Shown here piece after piece: positions 927-19,161 of a stretch of 32,000 bases of DNA (positions within the stretch are counted from its first letter, which is position 1; every line of letters starts with the position of its first letter). Under the pieces are notes generated by a model. It did not search any database. It worked only from the letters and a program-made list of their open reading frames with translations, and was not told the DNA's origin. Source of the stretch: Guillardia theta nucleomorph (Eukaryota; Protista; Cryptophyta). The translations under genes and the position numbers were made by a program. The stretch is from assembly GCA_000002975.1 (NCBI GenBank), contig AF083031.2:60001-92000 (forward strand). Direction: 5' to 3'.

Positions 927-1450
927 TTATAAAAAACGGCTTTTTTGTACAAAATGTTGTGTTATTGGGTAATTTATCTTTTTACCAAGAAATTGCTTAA
1001 CGTTACTTTTTGATGATTCTATTTCTTTGATTCTTTCAACTCTTAAAATTGTGACATCCTTAGGCTTTATTTTGAACCTTCCACCCAATTCTATATAAAA
1101 TTGTTCAACTGCTCCTGTCATCATGAAATCTCGATATTCTTTAAATAGATTAACATAACCATTCTTAATTTTAACTTTACTCCATATTCCATAAGTTTTG
1201 ACAAAGTTATTTTTTTTTTCATAGATTTTTTGCGCTATGATAATTGATCCATTTTTTTTTTTTAATTTTTGTGTTTTTTTTAAAACACTCCAAAATTTGG
1301 ACTTTGCAGTTATTTTGTTAGGAGAAAAATTCTTCATAAAATAAATTGAATCTGATTTATTAGTGTTATTATTAGCCAAACATAAATATTGTTTCAACCA
1401 GCTCTTTAATTATTTTCTGAACAAACAAAAAAACTATTAATACTTACCAT
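927..1450 (-). CDS. rpl18a: 60S ribosomal protein L18a (eL20), spliced: complement join(927..1403,1448..1450), 159 aa, MSWLKQYLCLA...
   Basis: eL20 motifs F.PN.I.AKSKFW..L....KLKK.NG.I, VKTYGIW and NLFKEYRD....GAVEQ.Y.E. The track start at 1397 is a TTG. The ATG at 1450 plus a 44-nt intron restores an N-terminus that aligns with eL20 (yeast MAHFKEY, recalled). Confidence 0.93.
1404..1447 (-). other. 44-nt spliceosomal intron immediately after the ATG of rpl18a
   Basis: ATG|GTAAGTATTAATAGTTTTTTTGTTTGTTCAGAAAATAATTAAAG|AGC TGG TTG. This is the only AG that gives an in-frame join past the in-frame TAA at 1412-1410. Confidence 0.88.
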
Positions 1451-1514: not shown

Positions 1515-1931
1515 ATGTTTATCATCAAAGGTAATGATACAAGAAATAAAAAAATTAAAAAAAAACTTAAGAATATAGGCTTAGATATAAAAATTAGAAA
1601 TGAAGGTAAAAACATAAGCTTCATAGATAAAAAATGTCCATTTACCGGCAATATTTCGATTAGAGGTAGGATTATGAAAGGAAAAATAGTTTCCACTAAA
1701 ATGGAAAAAACTGTAATTGTAAGGAGAGATTATTTACACTGGATTCCAAAGTATAAAAGATTTGAAAAGAGACACAAAAACATTCCTTGTCACTGCTCGC
1801 CTTTATTTAGAGTTAAAGAAGGCGATTTTGTAACAATTGGACAATGTAGACCACTTTCTAAAACAGTTAGATTTAATGTTATTCACGTTGAAAAGGATAG
1901 GAGAGCTCGTAATAAAAAAATTTATAGCTAA
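1515..1931 (+). CDS. rps11: 40S ribosomal protein S11 (uS17)
   Basis: [59 protein letters not shown]. Confidence 0.98.
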
Positions 1932-1955
1932 ATAATGAATTTTTAATTTAATTCT

Positions 1956-2294
1956 ATGTCAAACTCAATCACTGGAGTAGTTTATATTGAAAATATTCCC
2001 AAAAAAATAACATATAAAAATCTCATTAAATTTCTGGAGAAATTTGGAAGAGTTAATAGAACTTTTTTTTCTAAAGATTTAAGCATTGAATATAAAATTA
2101 TAGGGTGGATTGAATATTCAAAAAAATGTAGTGCTAAAAAAGTATCCCTTAAAAAAGTACGTGACATTTGGGATAAACATATTACGTTCAATGAAAATTT
2201 TAAAATTTTTTATTTAAAAAGTATAAATTGGAAATCTTTGACATTTGTTAGAAAATCTATTTATAAGTTTGATAAAAAGTGCCCAAACATTTGA
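1956..2294 (+). CDS. esf2: Minimal Esf2/ABT1 pre-rRNA processing factor (RRM core only)
   Basis: TGVVYIENIP...KFGRVNRTF...GWIEYSKKCSAK...IFYLKSINWKSLT matches the Esf2 pattern TGVVY...IP / FG.V.R.F / GW.EF..K..AK / KYL..F.W.DLT. Confidence 0.78.
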   Translation: MSNSITGVVYIENIPKKITYKNLIKFLEKFGRVNRTFFSKDLSIEYKIIGWIEYSKKCSAKKVSLKKVRDIWDKHITFNENFKIFYLKSINWKSLTFVRKSIYKFDKKCPNI

Positions 2295-2306
2295 AATAGT
2301 TTCTGG

Positions 2307-2741
2307 TCAGTAAATAAAAATGATATTTTGTATAAATTTTAAAATTTTTGCAATTAAGAAAATTTGAAATTTTTTGCTTTCATATTTTACTATGTTAAAC
2401 ATATTTTGAAATAATCTTTTAAAATTATGTATTTTTAAATAACAAATCTCTAAAATTTGGTTTTCATCTCTAGAGCTACTATTTATTCTCAGTTCGTTAT
2501 AAACTTTAAAGATAGTACTATAAGATAAATTTTTTTTTATTTCAAATTCTATAGGTTCTAGAATTTTTAGTAAAAATTTATAATTAATCTTTTTATTATT
2601 TTGCAAAAATTTTTGAGTCTTTACTATGATTTTTAAAGGTAATATATTTACTTTTTTTAAAAAAAAAAAAATATATAATTTTTTTTTAAATTTATTTAAT
2701 AGTTTTACAATTAGAATTACTAAAAATAAAACTTGGTTCAT
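2307..2741 (-). CDS. Hypothetical protein, 144 aa
   Basis: Long ORF that tiles the gap without overlap. No motif recognised. Confidence 0.6.
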   Translation of the reverse strand: MNQVLFLVILIVKLLNKFKKKLYIFFFLKKVNILPLKIIVKTQKFLQNNKKINYKFLLKILEPIEFEIKKNLSYSTIFKVYNELRINSSSRDENQILEICYLKIHNFKRLFQNMFNIVKYESKKFQIFLIAKILKFIQNIIFIY

Positions 2742-2784
2742 CTTAAAATTTTAACATAAATAAAATTTATGATTTTAAAAATTA

Positions 2785-2928
2785 ATGTATAAGTGTAAAA
2801 TTTGTAAAATATTCATTGGAAAAAAAAATAAAAAAATACTTGACCAGCACGTGAAAGGGAATCGACATAAGATTAATAAATATAATAAATTAGTTAGCAA
2901 AATTAAATATTTTTTTTTAAATTGTTAA
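2785..2928 (+). CDS. snrpC: U1 snRNP protein C-like matrin-type zinc finger, 47 aa (MYKCKICKIFIGKKNKKILDQHVKGNRHKINKYNKLVSKIKYFFLNC)
   Basis: Translated by hand: ATG 2785, TAA 2926-2928. C-x2-C-x14-H-x2-G-x2-H-K-x-N has the same spacing as U1-C. It is below the ORF-track size cut-off. Confidence 0.8.
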   Translation: MYKCKICKIFIGKKNKKILDQHVKGNRHKINKYNKLVSKIKYFFLNC

Positions 2929-2977
2929 CGATATCTATAAAAAGTAATTATAATAAATAATTAATTCTTTAATTAGT

Positions 2978-3622
2978 ATGAAGTTAAAACTTCAAGGTAA
3001 AAAATTTTCAATTTCAAACATATGTTTCTCGTTTTCTATAAACAAAAAAAAAAAAAATTTTTATATTTCTAAAAAAAATTCTTCACCCGATAGAGAACTT
3101 TTCGATAAAAGAAAAATCATTTATGATAATGAAAAAATTTTATCAATTTCATTCGTAAAAAGTTCATATTTCTTTTTAAGTAAATTTTGGGGATTTATAG
3201 AAAAATTTATTTATAATACAACTACTTCTTATACTAAGTATAACTTATTGTATTTTTTAAATAACAGATGTGTAAGAAAAATTTTAAAATTTTCTGAATT
3301 AGAATTATTCGATTTGTTTATATATTTATTTTTACATTTGAAATTTTATTTTATAGACAGACATAAATTTCAATTTTTTCTAAGAAAATCTAATTGTTGG
3401 GTTGTCAAAAAAAAAAATTCTTATCTGTATTTGATAATTAATTTTTTAAGTCAAAAATTTTTAAATTTTCCAATTTATTTATATCAAATGTCATTTAGAA
3501 TAAAACCAGTTGGCTTAAAATTTTGTTTTTTTAACAACAACACAATTCTACTTTACAATATTCATCCGAATATCTTGATTAATCCTCCAATATCAGAAAA
3601 GATAAAATGTTCTTATAGATAA
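2978..3622 (+). CDS. Hypothetical protein, 214 aa
   Basis: Long ORF that tiles the gap. No motif recognised. Confidence 0.65.
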   Translation: MKLKLQGKKFSISNICFSFSINKKKKNFYISKKNSSPDRELFDKRKIIYDNEKILSISFVKSSYFFLSKFWGFIEKFIYNTTTSYTKYNLLYFLNNRCVRKILKFSELELFDLFIYLFLHLKFYFIDRHKFQFFLRKSNCWVVKKKNSYLYLIINFLSQKFLNFPIYLYQMSFRIKPVGLKFCFFNNNTILLYNIHPNILINPPISEKIKCSYR

Positions 3623-3634
3623 GTTATATGTAAT

Positions 3635-4039
3635 TTAAAAATCTAATTTTTTTTTTCTGTCAATCATATATAACAAAGCTTTATTATATGATGAATGAAA
3701 TTTTAACTCAATAATTTGGTTTTCAATACTATTTTTGAATGAAGTTTTAGGATGATTTTTTATTTCATTTTCTTTTTTTATAATAAGTACTCCCTCTATT
3801 TCCATTGAACTACACTCGATTTTTTGATTTATGAACCAAATCCTTCTGTTAGGCAATCCCATTAAGATACCTTGAAATGTGTAAGAATTTATATTCAAAA
3901 AAATTTTAGAATTATTTAAAATTTTCAATTTTAATGATAGATTTTTTTTATAAATATTTTCTTTTAAACTTTTTTTTTCAGTATTTAATTTAAGGATTCT
4001 TCCTAAAAACAATGTTGGAATTGTAATCAGATTAATCAT
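3635..4039 (-). CDS. Hypothetical protein, 134 aa; possibly an eroded TFIID subunit Taf7 N-terminal domain
   Basis: The ORF is clear. Taf7 resemblance is weak but ordered: LITIP ~ FILRLP, GILMGLP ~ KLVDLP, EIEGVLII ~ DI.Q.LV. Confidence 0.6.
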   Translation of the reverse strand: MINLITIPTLFLGRILKLNTEKKSLKENIYKKNLSLKLKILNNSKIFLNINSYTFQGILMGLPNRRIWFINQKIECSSMEIEGVLIIKKENEIKNHPKTSFKNSIENQIIELKFHSSYNKALLYMIDRKKKLDF

Positions 4040-4081
4040 TCAAAAAAAATTAATATAATTTATAAATTTTTTAATTAAGAG

Positions 4082-4325
4082 ATGGTTTTTTTGACTGCTT
4101 GTCTAGCAATTAGAGGGTAAGTAAATATTAATGAAAAAGTAAAAAAAAGATTTTAACTTAAGAGATAAAAATCTTTTGAGATTTTTTCAATTAATAGAAT
4201 CACAGGGGTGTAGAGTTAGGATTATAGAGGAAATATTAGAAGATAATATATTATTATTTAAGCCTTGGTCTAAAAAATTTCTAATCTTTGGATTAAAGAG
4301 ACTTTCTAGGTTTCTCACAAGGTAG
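4082..4325 (+). CDS. tfb5: TFIIH subunit Tfb5/p8/TTDA, spliced: join(4082..4116,4163..4325), 65 aa
   Basis: Product is MVFLTACLAIRGDKNLLRFFQLIESQGCRVRIIEEILEDNILLFKPWSKKFLIFGLKRLSRFLTR. M1, V2, I10, D13 and F19 are in register with human p8. LEDNILLFKPWSKKFLIFGLKRL aligns without gaps to yeast Tfb5 LDDTHLLVNPSKVEFVKHELNRL (recalled). Confidence 0.82.
4117..4162 (+). other. 46-nt phase-2 spliceosomal intron in tfb5
   Basis: GG|GTAAGTAAATATTAATGAAAAAGTAAAAAAAAGATTTTAACTTAAG|A GAT. Removing it bypasses the TAA at 4118-4120 and joins an ATG-less open frame. Confidence 0.82.
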
Positions 4326-9400: not shown

Positions 9401-10177
9401 ATGTTAAATAAATCAAATTACCTATGCAACTTTGATGTAATAAATAATCTTAGATTAACGAAATTAAAAAATCATTCATTACAATTCAAAAATTTATCCT
9501 TCAATGGAATTAATTTTATATTATGTATTGGAAACATGCATCAATTTAATTTTATTTTTAAAAATGAAATTTATTCTTTTTTTCCAAAATATTATTTCGA
9601 AGTAGCAATTATTCAAATTTTCTATGATTATTTATTATTATTTCAATTTCCATTAATCAATATCTGCAAAATACCATTGTTAAAATGTATAAATAGTTTA
9701 CATAAAAATTTTTTGTTCGAAGAGACCGCTGATTTTGTTAAAGTAATAATAAACGAAACTCTTCTGAAAAAATGCATTTCCTACCATCCTTCGTTGGCAA
9801 AATGCTGGTTGCATTACACATTAGAAGGAAAGGAAGATTATTTTTTTTGGAAAGAATTTTTTAATTCATGTTATAATTTCATGACTAATTCTAATAACAA
9901 AAAATTTTATGACTTTATGAATTACTACAAAGAATCCAAACAAGACAAAAAAAGAACAAGTTATGAAAAATTTATTATGAAAAATAATATACAAGTTTAT
10001 GCTGGAAAAAACAAAGAAAAATATTTTAGTAGAACTTCAAGTATTCATAAAAAATTGGATAAAGATTTTATAATTAGAAAAAGACATTTTCTCATTTTTA
10101 ATAAAAATAGGAAAAGAAAGATAAATATAATGAGTTTGGGTTTTAAAAAGTTTATTCTTTTGTTTTCGCAATATTAA
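9401..10177 (+). CDS. BSD-domain protein, candidate TFIIH p62/Tfb1
   Basis: The track start at 9368 is a TTG; the first ATG is at 9401. CISYHPSLAKCW...EDYFFWKEFFNS resembles the Tfb1 second BSD domain, IF..YP.V.K.Y......E.EFW.RFF.S. Confidence 0.6.
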   Translation: MLNKSNYLCNFDVINNLRLTKLKNHSLQFKNLSFNGINFILCIGNMHQFNFIFKNEIYSFFPKYYFEVAIIQIFYDYLLLFQFPLINICKIPLLKCINSLHKNFLFEETADFVKVIINETLLKKCISYHPSLAKCWLHYTLEGKEDYFFWKEFFNSCYNFMTNSNNKKFYDFMNYYKESKQDKKRTSYEKFIMKNNIQVYAGKNKEKYFSRTSSIHKKLDKDFIIRKRHFLIFNKNRKRKINIMSLGFKKFILLFSQY

Positions 10178-18927: not shown

Positions 18928-19161
18928 TTATCTTAATTCAATTTTGGAAGGAAGAACCATTATTCTAATATTATTAAATCTTATGGAAAGATTTCCTTTA
19001 AAAAACTTTTGTCCATCAATATCTATATCACTAATATTTGAAACTTTCAAATTCATATTTTTGTCAACATTAACTATAACACCCATTATAATTATATTAT
19101 TTTTTAATTCAATTATTATTTCTTCTCCTTTTAACTGTTTTATAAAATTGTATATTTTCAT
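18928..19161 (-). CDS. snrpD1: snRNP core protein Sm D1 (Lsm2 not excluded)
   Basis: Sm1 motif IELKN....G.I..VD.NMN. Sm2 motif LSIRFNNIR..VLP ~ SmD1 LSIRGNNIRYFILP. Confidence 0.8.
   Translation of the reverse strand: MKIYNFIKQLKGEEIIIELKNNIIIMGVIVNVDKNMNLKVSNISDIDIDGQKFFKGNLSIRFNNIRIMVLPSKIELR

Follow-up and report, generated by a model that had tools for sequence, protein, structure and literature searches.

The window analysed here is a 32,000-nucleotide stretch (C3:60001-92000) of chromosome 3 (C3, 174,133 bp), one of the three contigs that make up the 551,264-bp nucleomorph genome of Guillardia theta. The GC content is about 20%, and there are eukaryotic rRNA genes at the end of the contig as well as a U6 gene. 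Between the start of orf144 on the minus strand and that of orf214 on the plus strand lies a gap of exactly 236 nucleotides (2742-2977). The original prediction had this gap occupied by an open reading frame, and its coordinates and translation agree with ours. The frame, which we call ORF47, can start only at the ATG at 2785, because the nearest upstream stop in the same frame is at 2776-2778. A short spacer on each side completes the gap (Table 1), and the one shared with orf144 is presumed to be a promoter region for both genes. This head-to-head layout is also found in four other nucleomorph contigs (L021, L023, L025 and L031, identified below). The sequence GTAAGT, searched for within 2785-2977, does not occur there, so there is no hint of an intron or of a downstream exon for ORF47. 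The ORF47 family is represented by a single copy in the 551-kb genome.

Table 1. Features of the ORF47 locus, in window coordinates.
Feature	Position	Strand	Description
rps11	1515-1931	+	Synteny anchor; Pfam Ribosomal_S17
112-aa RRM protein	1956-2294	+	Synteny anchor; Pfam RRM_1
orf144	2307..2741	-	Synteny anchor; ORFs of 334-437 aa hold this position in other nucleomorphs
Spacer, 43 nt	2742..2784		Between the divergent starts of orf144 (-) and ORF47 (+)
ORF47	2785..2928	+	47 codons, ATG start, TAA stop; very likely a miniature U1-C (snRNP C) orthologue (ORF listing; orthologue profile)
Zinc-finger core	2794..2868	+	C4-x2-C7-x14-H22-x5-H28; the invariant GNRHK block is residues 25-29
Predicted long helix, residues 26-46	2860..2922	+	Counterpart of U1-C helix B; AlphaFold2 model
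Spacer, 49 nt	2929..2977		From the ORF47 stop to the orf214 ATG
orf214	2978..3622	+	Synteny anchor on the downstream side; its orthologues in L021, L023 and L031 have 238-252 aa

The zinc-finger motif CKIC-x14-HVKGNRH, which had been read in ORF47 before, is reproduced from the letters, with the codons of the putative zinc ligands at 2794-2796 (C4), 2803-2805 (C7), 2848-2850 (H22) and 2866-2868 (H28). A search of all six frames of the 174-kb chromosome 3 for the relaxed, stop-free pattern C..C.{10,16}H.{5}H finds it once, in ORF47. Such a pattern is expected 0.10-0.135 times per chromosome by chance (0.013-0.025 times for the x14 spacing alone), so the motif alone is suggestive at most. Searched against Pfam as a single sequence, ORF47 has zf-U1 as its best family (15.2 bits, E 0.018, under the cut-off of 22 bits) and aligns its core without gaps to positions 4-35 of that family, while zf-met and jaz score E 1.1 and E 1.3. 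A single-sequence phmmer search of ORF47 against the PDB gives no match, and NCBIfam gives none. The exhaustive phmmer search of 1.8 billion representatives returns 11 matches, all of them multi-finger zf-met/jaz proteins, and no self match. We do not accept these proteins as relatives: their alignments need a 2-3-residue deletion and their scores come from summed repeats. Taken by itself, the ORF47 sequence is suggestive.

For the metagenome scan, which takes queries of at least 48 residues, ORF47 was lengthened by two in-frame upstream codons (2779-2925). The sole match, KILDHYVKGNRHKIN (L020:6001-6063, plus strand), has 67% identity with residues 15-35 of ORF47 (residues 17-37 of the query). 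The ORF around it has 991 aa, resembles a bacterial amidohydrolase and belongs to a 265-kb metagenome contig with 44% GC; the stretch itself has no zinc-ligand context and is rejected as a chance match. This match illustrates how little a short identity means at the size of ORF47.

It is conceivable, then, that ORF47 is a chance open frame in an AT-rich spacer that happens to spell a C2H2 motif. The motif alone would be expected about a tenth of a time per chromosome, the single-sequence Pfam E-value is just 0.018, and gene callers had not called the frame. The comparison with other nucleomorphs contradicts this reading. Using rps11 as an anchor leads to nucleomorph contigs of other cryptophytes: Chroomonas mesostigmatica CP003681 (L021), two Logan assemblies (L023 and L031), and a 158-kb metagenome scaffold (L025) whose rps11 falls into one cluster, at 90% or more, with that of Cryptomonas curvata. 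All four contigs have the gene order rpl18a(-), rps11(+), RRM(+), long ORF(-), small ORF(+) in common, and an orthologue of orf214 comes next after the small ORF in three of them (L021, L023 and L031). The small ORF has 57 aa in C. mesostigmatica, 54 aa in each of the Logan contigs and 48 aa in the C. curvata-like scaffold, and it always begins with M-[YF]-x-C and has the x14/x5 spacing of ORF47. The syntenic counterpart that had been expected elsewhere is therefore present in Chroomonas mesostigmatica, in Cryptomonas and in two Logan nucleomorph contigs. Two further rps11 matches (P0084 and P0064) are rejected as nucleomorph loci, their contexts being nuclear and non-nucleomorph. With the RRM neighbour as query, the one relative obtained (89% identical) is on a 1.1-kb contig, which ends before the position of ORF47.

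An alignment of nine sequences was made from ORF47, the four contig ORFs and four further Cryptomonas database proteins. Ten residues (M1, C4, C7, I9, H22, G25, N26, R27, H28 and K29) are invariant in all nine, and the spacing CxxC-x14-H-x5-H is identical throughout, as it is in human U1-C. The first cysteine is residue 4 in every orthologue and residue 6 in human and yeast U1-C. A profile of the eight orthologues, made without the G. theta sequence, finds ORF47 among the 4128 six-frame ORFs of chromosome 3 with an E-value of 1.7e-13 (48.1 bits). The runner-up (C3:115099-115185, minus strand, E 4e-4) is a chance match, antisense inside a CDK-like kinase gene.

The conservation is that of a coding sequence. 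Aligned with its orthologues, ORF47 reaches about 2.1 BLOSUM units per residue, which is the level of rpl18a and 3-5 times that of the orphan neighbours; orf214 is 23-29% identical to its orthologues, and orf144 reaches a local identity of just 27-32% with its counterparts. Two Cryptomonas copies share 88% identity in the coding sequence and 58-62% in the flanks, and over codons 1-32 the values are dN 0.05 and dS 0.30, a dN/dS of about 0.17. Between genera the synonymous sites are saturated (pS 0.5-1.0), with pN of 0.22-0.42. The ORF47 family is under purifying selection and is not a chance frame. With position, length, spacing and ten residues conserved in at least four other nucleomorph lineages, where the flanking spacers and orphan genes barely align, and with the independent profile match given above, a chance frame is highly improbable, and ORF47 is almost certainly a real, conserved gene.

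A marine nucleomorph-like contig from TARA (L035:10904-11205 and L036) presents a different arrangement. It keeps rpl18a with its intron, rps11 and the RRM gene, and has no U1-C-like ORF within 15 kb; a GPN-type GTPase gene stands where the long ORF and U1-C pair stand elsewhere. In this lineage the U1-C ORF has either moved or been lost. The rpl18a intron means that the lineage is not intron-free, so nothing follows from the absence of the U1-C-like ORF there.

To which family of zinc fingers does the small protein belong? The only zinc-finger family that Pfam gives for the orthologues is zf-U1, at 35.3, 22.8 and 20.8 bits against the cut-off of 22; the proposed Pfam check therefore leaves ORF47 alone below the cut-off and takes its orthologues up to 35.3 bits. 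When all PDB sequences are searched with the nine-sequence profile, the five best matches are all U1-C: human U1-C at E 3.3e-8, 3.5e-7 and 1.1e-6, another U1-C at 5.4e-5 and yeast Yhc1 at 0.57. With U1-C the profile aligns ungapped from residue 2 to about residue 44, at an offset of +2, and the alignment reaches into the helix beyond the finger. Grouping with another matrin/C2H2 family, the outcome that the original prediction had named as telling against it, is not what the profile gives, as it ranks U1-C first and WBP4 next, at E 1.6.

A predicted structure points in the same direction. The AlphaFold2 model (mean pLDDT 86), a prediction that rests on the nine-sequence alignment, has a beta hairpin (strands 2-3 and 10-11) and helices at residues 16-24 and 26-46, the latter of 21 residues. 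In a Foldseek search with this model the best five matches are all Yhc1/U1-C chains with TMq of 0.67-0.90 (Yhc1 0.85-0.90 with an rmsd of 0.8-1.2 A, human 4pjo 0.67); their E-values are not significant, which is to be expected with 47 residues.

These results also bear on the possibility that ORF47 is a zf-U1-type protein of another descent, acting at another splicing step: from WBP4/FBP21 (a B-complex factor), ZMAT5 (U11/U12-20K), Snu23/ZMAT2 or SF3a66. The GxxHKxN helix is common to all these U1-like fingers, the profile search of the PDB does bring up WBP4, Foldseek brings up a U11 snRNP chain, and the exhaustive single-sequence search gave zf-met/jaz proteins only. WBP4, however, scores 11.7 bits against 36.3 bits for U1-C and has to be aligned with a one-residue deletion, because its spacer has 13 residues and not 14; the 13-residue spacer that the original prediction gave for this finger is thereby seen in the alignment. 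The U11 chain is at rank 10 in Foldseek with a TMq of 0.53. Chains of SF3a, Snu23 and ZMAT2 occur in PDB spliceosome entries, and no chain of SF3a, Snu23/ZMAT2, ZMAT5 or Bud20 type is found at E<=10 in the profile search of PDB sequences. The finger of ORF47 is at the extreme N-terminus, as in U1-C, and the reported nucleomorph introns are all GUAAGU and of U2 type (PMC6461891). Descent from one of these other proteins is accordingly given only a slim chance, and ORF47 is very likely an orthologue of U1-C. The claim of a zinc-finger-only U1-C holds, because every orthologue has 47-57 aa. As an overall explanation, we consider it likely that ORF47 is a real, unannotated gene for a U1-C/Yhc1 orthologue that consists of the finger and part of the long helix.

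We turn to transcription at the locus, using one stranded raw-read RNA-seq run of which about 6% was read. The strand rule comes from the two flanking minus-strand genes, for both of which the first mate maps to the plus strand. Over ORF47 the sense coverage is 0.3-2.1x and the antisense coverage 2-8x, and there are no splice joints or defined transcript ends over it in that run. The ORF47 region is transcribed, and antisense dominates. Of the RNA-seq evidence anticipated for the gene, the sense reads are there, at a low level that stays below the antisense, and the defined transcript ends are not. From 2740 to 3010 the minus-type coverage (2-8x) exceeds the sense coverage over both ORF47 and the start of orf214, which suggests that minus-strand transcription starting at about 3010-3060 runs across ORF47 into orf144. 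The reads also touch on the reference sequence itself: in the A-run at 2316, three codons before the orf144 stop, one base fewer is found in 10 of 21 raw reads and in the covering contig of all three contig runs. This may be a homopolymer-length error in the reference or a strain difference.

The excess of antisense over sense coverage is what one might expect if a U1-C-derived ORF47 were decaying or repurposed in G. theta, with the locus acting chiefly as promoter or 5' region for its minus-strand neighbour. That neighbour itself does not reach half the size of its counterparts, and G. theta is the most divergent member of the family in the loop that contacts RNA and SmD3 (R21>L, K22>D, T11>I and T14>G). 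Yet the frame is intact, and all four zinc ligands and all ten family-invariant residues are kept. The pN of ORF47 against other genera (0.28-0.36, at saturated synonymous sites) is not above that of other lineages (0.22-0.42), and sense reads do exist. Overlapping and antisense transcription is, moreover, usual in nucleomorphs. We therefore judge decay or repurposing to be unlikely.

ORF47 appears to be unannotated. The exact protein is not found among about 15 billion predicted proteins, which do include the products of the neighbouring rps11 and RRM genes, and this fits the description of the frame as uncalled in the original prediction, along with its remark that so small a gene easily escapes annotation. 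Two orthologues are already deposited. The 48-aa C. curvata protein (UXY87799.1) carries the name "U1 small nuclear ribonucleoprotein C", and CMESO_235 of C. mesostigmatica, deposited as a "hypothetical protein", stands in UniRef as a "U1-C C2H2-type zinc finger domain-containing protein". ORF47 therefore joins a known family and is not a new type of protein. Among the papers searched, none describes a nucleomorph U1-C.

The splicing inventory published for G. theta has 15 spliceosomal proteins and a U1 snRNA, with no nucleomorph gene for U1A or U1-70K, and the small-RNA study is silent on U1-C (PMC6461891). The U1 snRNA, reported from small-RNA sequencing, is divergent: it has ACUUAC and is without stem-loop IV (PMC6461891). 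Our searches of the genome with Rfam U1 (RF00003) and with U1-70K (PF12220) give no match, both being insensitive, as a similar search with PF06220 missed ORF47 itself. The genome has eight Sm/LSm genes, with SmD3 clear at C2:75896-76135. One of the eight is a 77-aa Sm-fold ORF in the window (18928-19161, minus strand, the same as L042:1474-1707; Pfam LSM 51 bits), which we presume to resemble SmD1. The GUAAGU introns, the reported U1 snRNA and SmD3 together lead us to propose ORF47 as the U1-C subunit of a nucleomorph U1 snRNP.

Several observations on splicing come from the same neighbourhood. The first exon of rpl18a (window about 1398-1450, minus strand) consists of the start codon only, ATG|GTAAGT, and the same arrangement is found in L021 (about 9871-9873, Chroomonas mesostigmatica), L023, L031 and L035. 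In the Cryptomonas-like L025 the rpl18a ATG is contiguous with the ORF and the start-codon-only exon is absent. The C. mesostigmatica counterpart of orf214 (L021:12523-13337, plus strand) is annotated with 252 aa from 815 nucleotides, and its direct translation has 27 stops, so it evidently has an intron; G. theta orf214 seems to need no such intron. The counterparts of orf144, all on the minus strand, are at L021:11148-12245, L023:7142-8155, L031:10999-12003 and L025:11109-12422. Those of L021, L023 and L025 begin with the motif FEK.L..N...IWL.Y.YFEIKN, and that of L023 has sub-threshold HAT matches (HAT_Syf1_CNRKL1_N E 6.2e-5, HAT_PRP39_C 0.0064). It is possible, on these sequence matches, that the long ORF is a Syf1/Clf1/Prp39-like splicing factor paired with U1-C. 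G. theta orf144, at its reduced size, is without the FEK motif. A tblastn search of window 1900-4300 with the long neighbour ORFs yields low-complexity noise and nothing else.

How would a protein of 47 residues act? The finger of human U1-C sits on SmD3, held by the N-terminus of U1-70K, and touches nothing but the backbone in the duplex that the 5' splice site forms with the 5' end of U1; its binding to U1 snRNP requires the U1-70K N-terminus (PMC4383343). Ten residues of the human protein touch RNA or SmD3 or are near the phosphate backbone: T11, Y12, T14, H15, S19, R21, K22, H24, R28 and K29 (PMC4383343). G. theta keeps one of the ten, H24, which is a zinc ligand. At the other nine positions, in the same order without H24, it has I, F, G, K, K, L, D, N and R, three of these changes being conservative (Y12>F, H15>K and K29>R). 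The Cryptomonas orthologues retain S17, R21 and K22, whereas the G. theta loop reads GKKNKK. R21 makes a salt bridge to SmD3 and is the most sensitive position in yeast (PMC3985668). Single alanine changes at the contact positions of U1-C are viable in yeast (PMC4383343, PMC3985668). Residues 134-151 of yeast Yhc1 are essential (PMC3985668), so a finger-only protein would fall short in yeast. A predicted complex of ORF47 with the nucleomorph SmD3 scores 0.00 without controls and is evidence neither way.

By analogy with the human and yeast U1 snRNP structures, ORF47 would bind one zinc ion through C4, C7, H22 and H28 and rest beside SmD3 on the Sm ring of the U1 snRNP in the nucleomorph. From there it could touch the sugar-phosphate backbone of the duplex formed by the 5' end of U1 snRNA (ACUUAC) and the GUAAGU 5' splice sites, and so make 5' splice-site recognition more stable without reading bases. 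The lysine-rich GKKNKK loop would stand where human U1-C has RNA-contacting residues, and any RNA contact there, the loop being lysine-rich in G. theta, may thus be mostly electrostatic. A role of ORF47 in 5' splice-site recognition is, by this reasoning, probable. A wider picture is put forward more tentatively, as a joint proposal that we regard as possible but doubtful as a whole: cryptophyte nucleomorphs would have a minimal U1 snRNP in which a finger-only U1-C of 47-57 aa is the sole organelle-encoded U1-specific protein, there is no nucleomorph U1-70K, and G. theta has a lysine-rich loop in place of the hydrogen-bonding and SmD3 salt-bridge residues. If it is true, ORF47 would be the smallest natural U1-C and would dock in another way onto both the Sm ring and the duplex at the 5' splice site.

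G. theta is the reference nucleomorph genome. ORF47 closes a gap in its annotation and adds a nucleomorph-encoded U1-specific protein to the published splicing inventory. The location of the gene means that the red-alga-derived compartment itself keeps part of the U1 protein set; to our knowledge, Cyanidioschyzon merolae, a red alga, is, in contrast, without U1 snRNP. The family of 47-57 aa is a natural minimal U1-C and can be useful for finding the parts of U1-C that are needed in 5' splice-site stabilisation. More generally, genes of fewer than 60 codons escape annotation in compact eukaryotic genomes, and they can be recovered through synteny across nucleomorphs.

The closest known proteins are those of Cryptomonas curvata (UXY87799.1, 48 aa) and Chroomonas mesostigmatica (CMESO_235, AFP65408.1, 57 aa), which share with ORF47 the locus, the spacing and the GNRHK block. 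The overall identity is 36-45%, and locally it is 49-59% over about the first 31-37 residues. ORF47 differs from the Cryptomonas proteins by being without their S..[IV]RK.H loop and NVSIY[FY] helix start, the features that resemble canonical U1-C; it has the lysine-rich loop instead, and an apparent deletion of three residues after residue 32.

Among the single fingers and finger arrays at greater distance, the zf-met/zf-C2H2_jaz dsRNA-binding fingers have a 12-residue spacer and usually stand in tandem arrays, unlike ORF47 with its 14-residue spacer and one finger. The finger of WBP4/FBP21 (PDB accession code: 5o9z, chain Q) is likewise a U1-type C2H2 finger near the N-terminus, with the similar patterns CK.[WF]I and GxxHKEN. 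It differs in its 13-residue spacer, its length of 376 aa and its score against the family profile (11.7 bits, E 1.6). WBP4 also has WW domains downstream of the finger, for which ORF47 is too short. ZMAT5 (U11/U12-20K) is a paralogue of U1-C with the same role in the minor spliceosome. Its N-terminal U1-type finger in the U11 snRNP (PDB accession code: 8r7n) is like that of ORF47, the structural match being weak (TMq 0.53), and it belongs to the minor spliceosome, whereas every reported nucleomorph intron is of the major, GUAAGU type (PMC6461891).

Human U1-C (SNRPC; PDB accession codes: 2vrd, 4pjo, 3cw1) and yeast Yhc1 (5zwn, 6n7p, 6g90) have the same N-terminal C2H2 finger with 14/5 spacers. 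Core positions are shared as well, namely the Y/F before the first cysteine, F10 with Y12, I11 with L13, I18 with V20 and G25 with G27, together with the HK after the finger. The modelled ORF47 has the predicted bb-alpha fold followed by a long helix, as in U1-C and Yhc1. They differ in extent: ORF47 has 47 aa where human U1-C has 159 and yeast Yhc1 231, and it is without both the C-terminal Pro/Arg-rich segment of U1-C and the essential segment that is specific to yeast.
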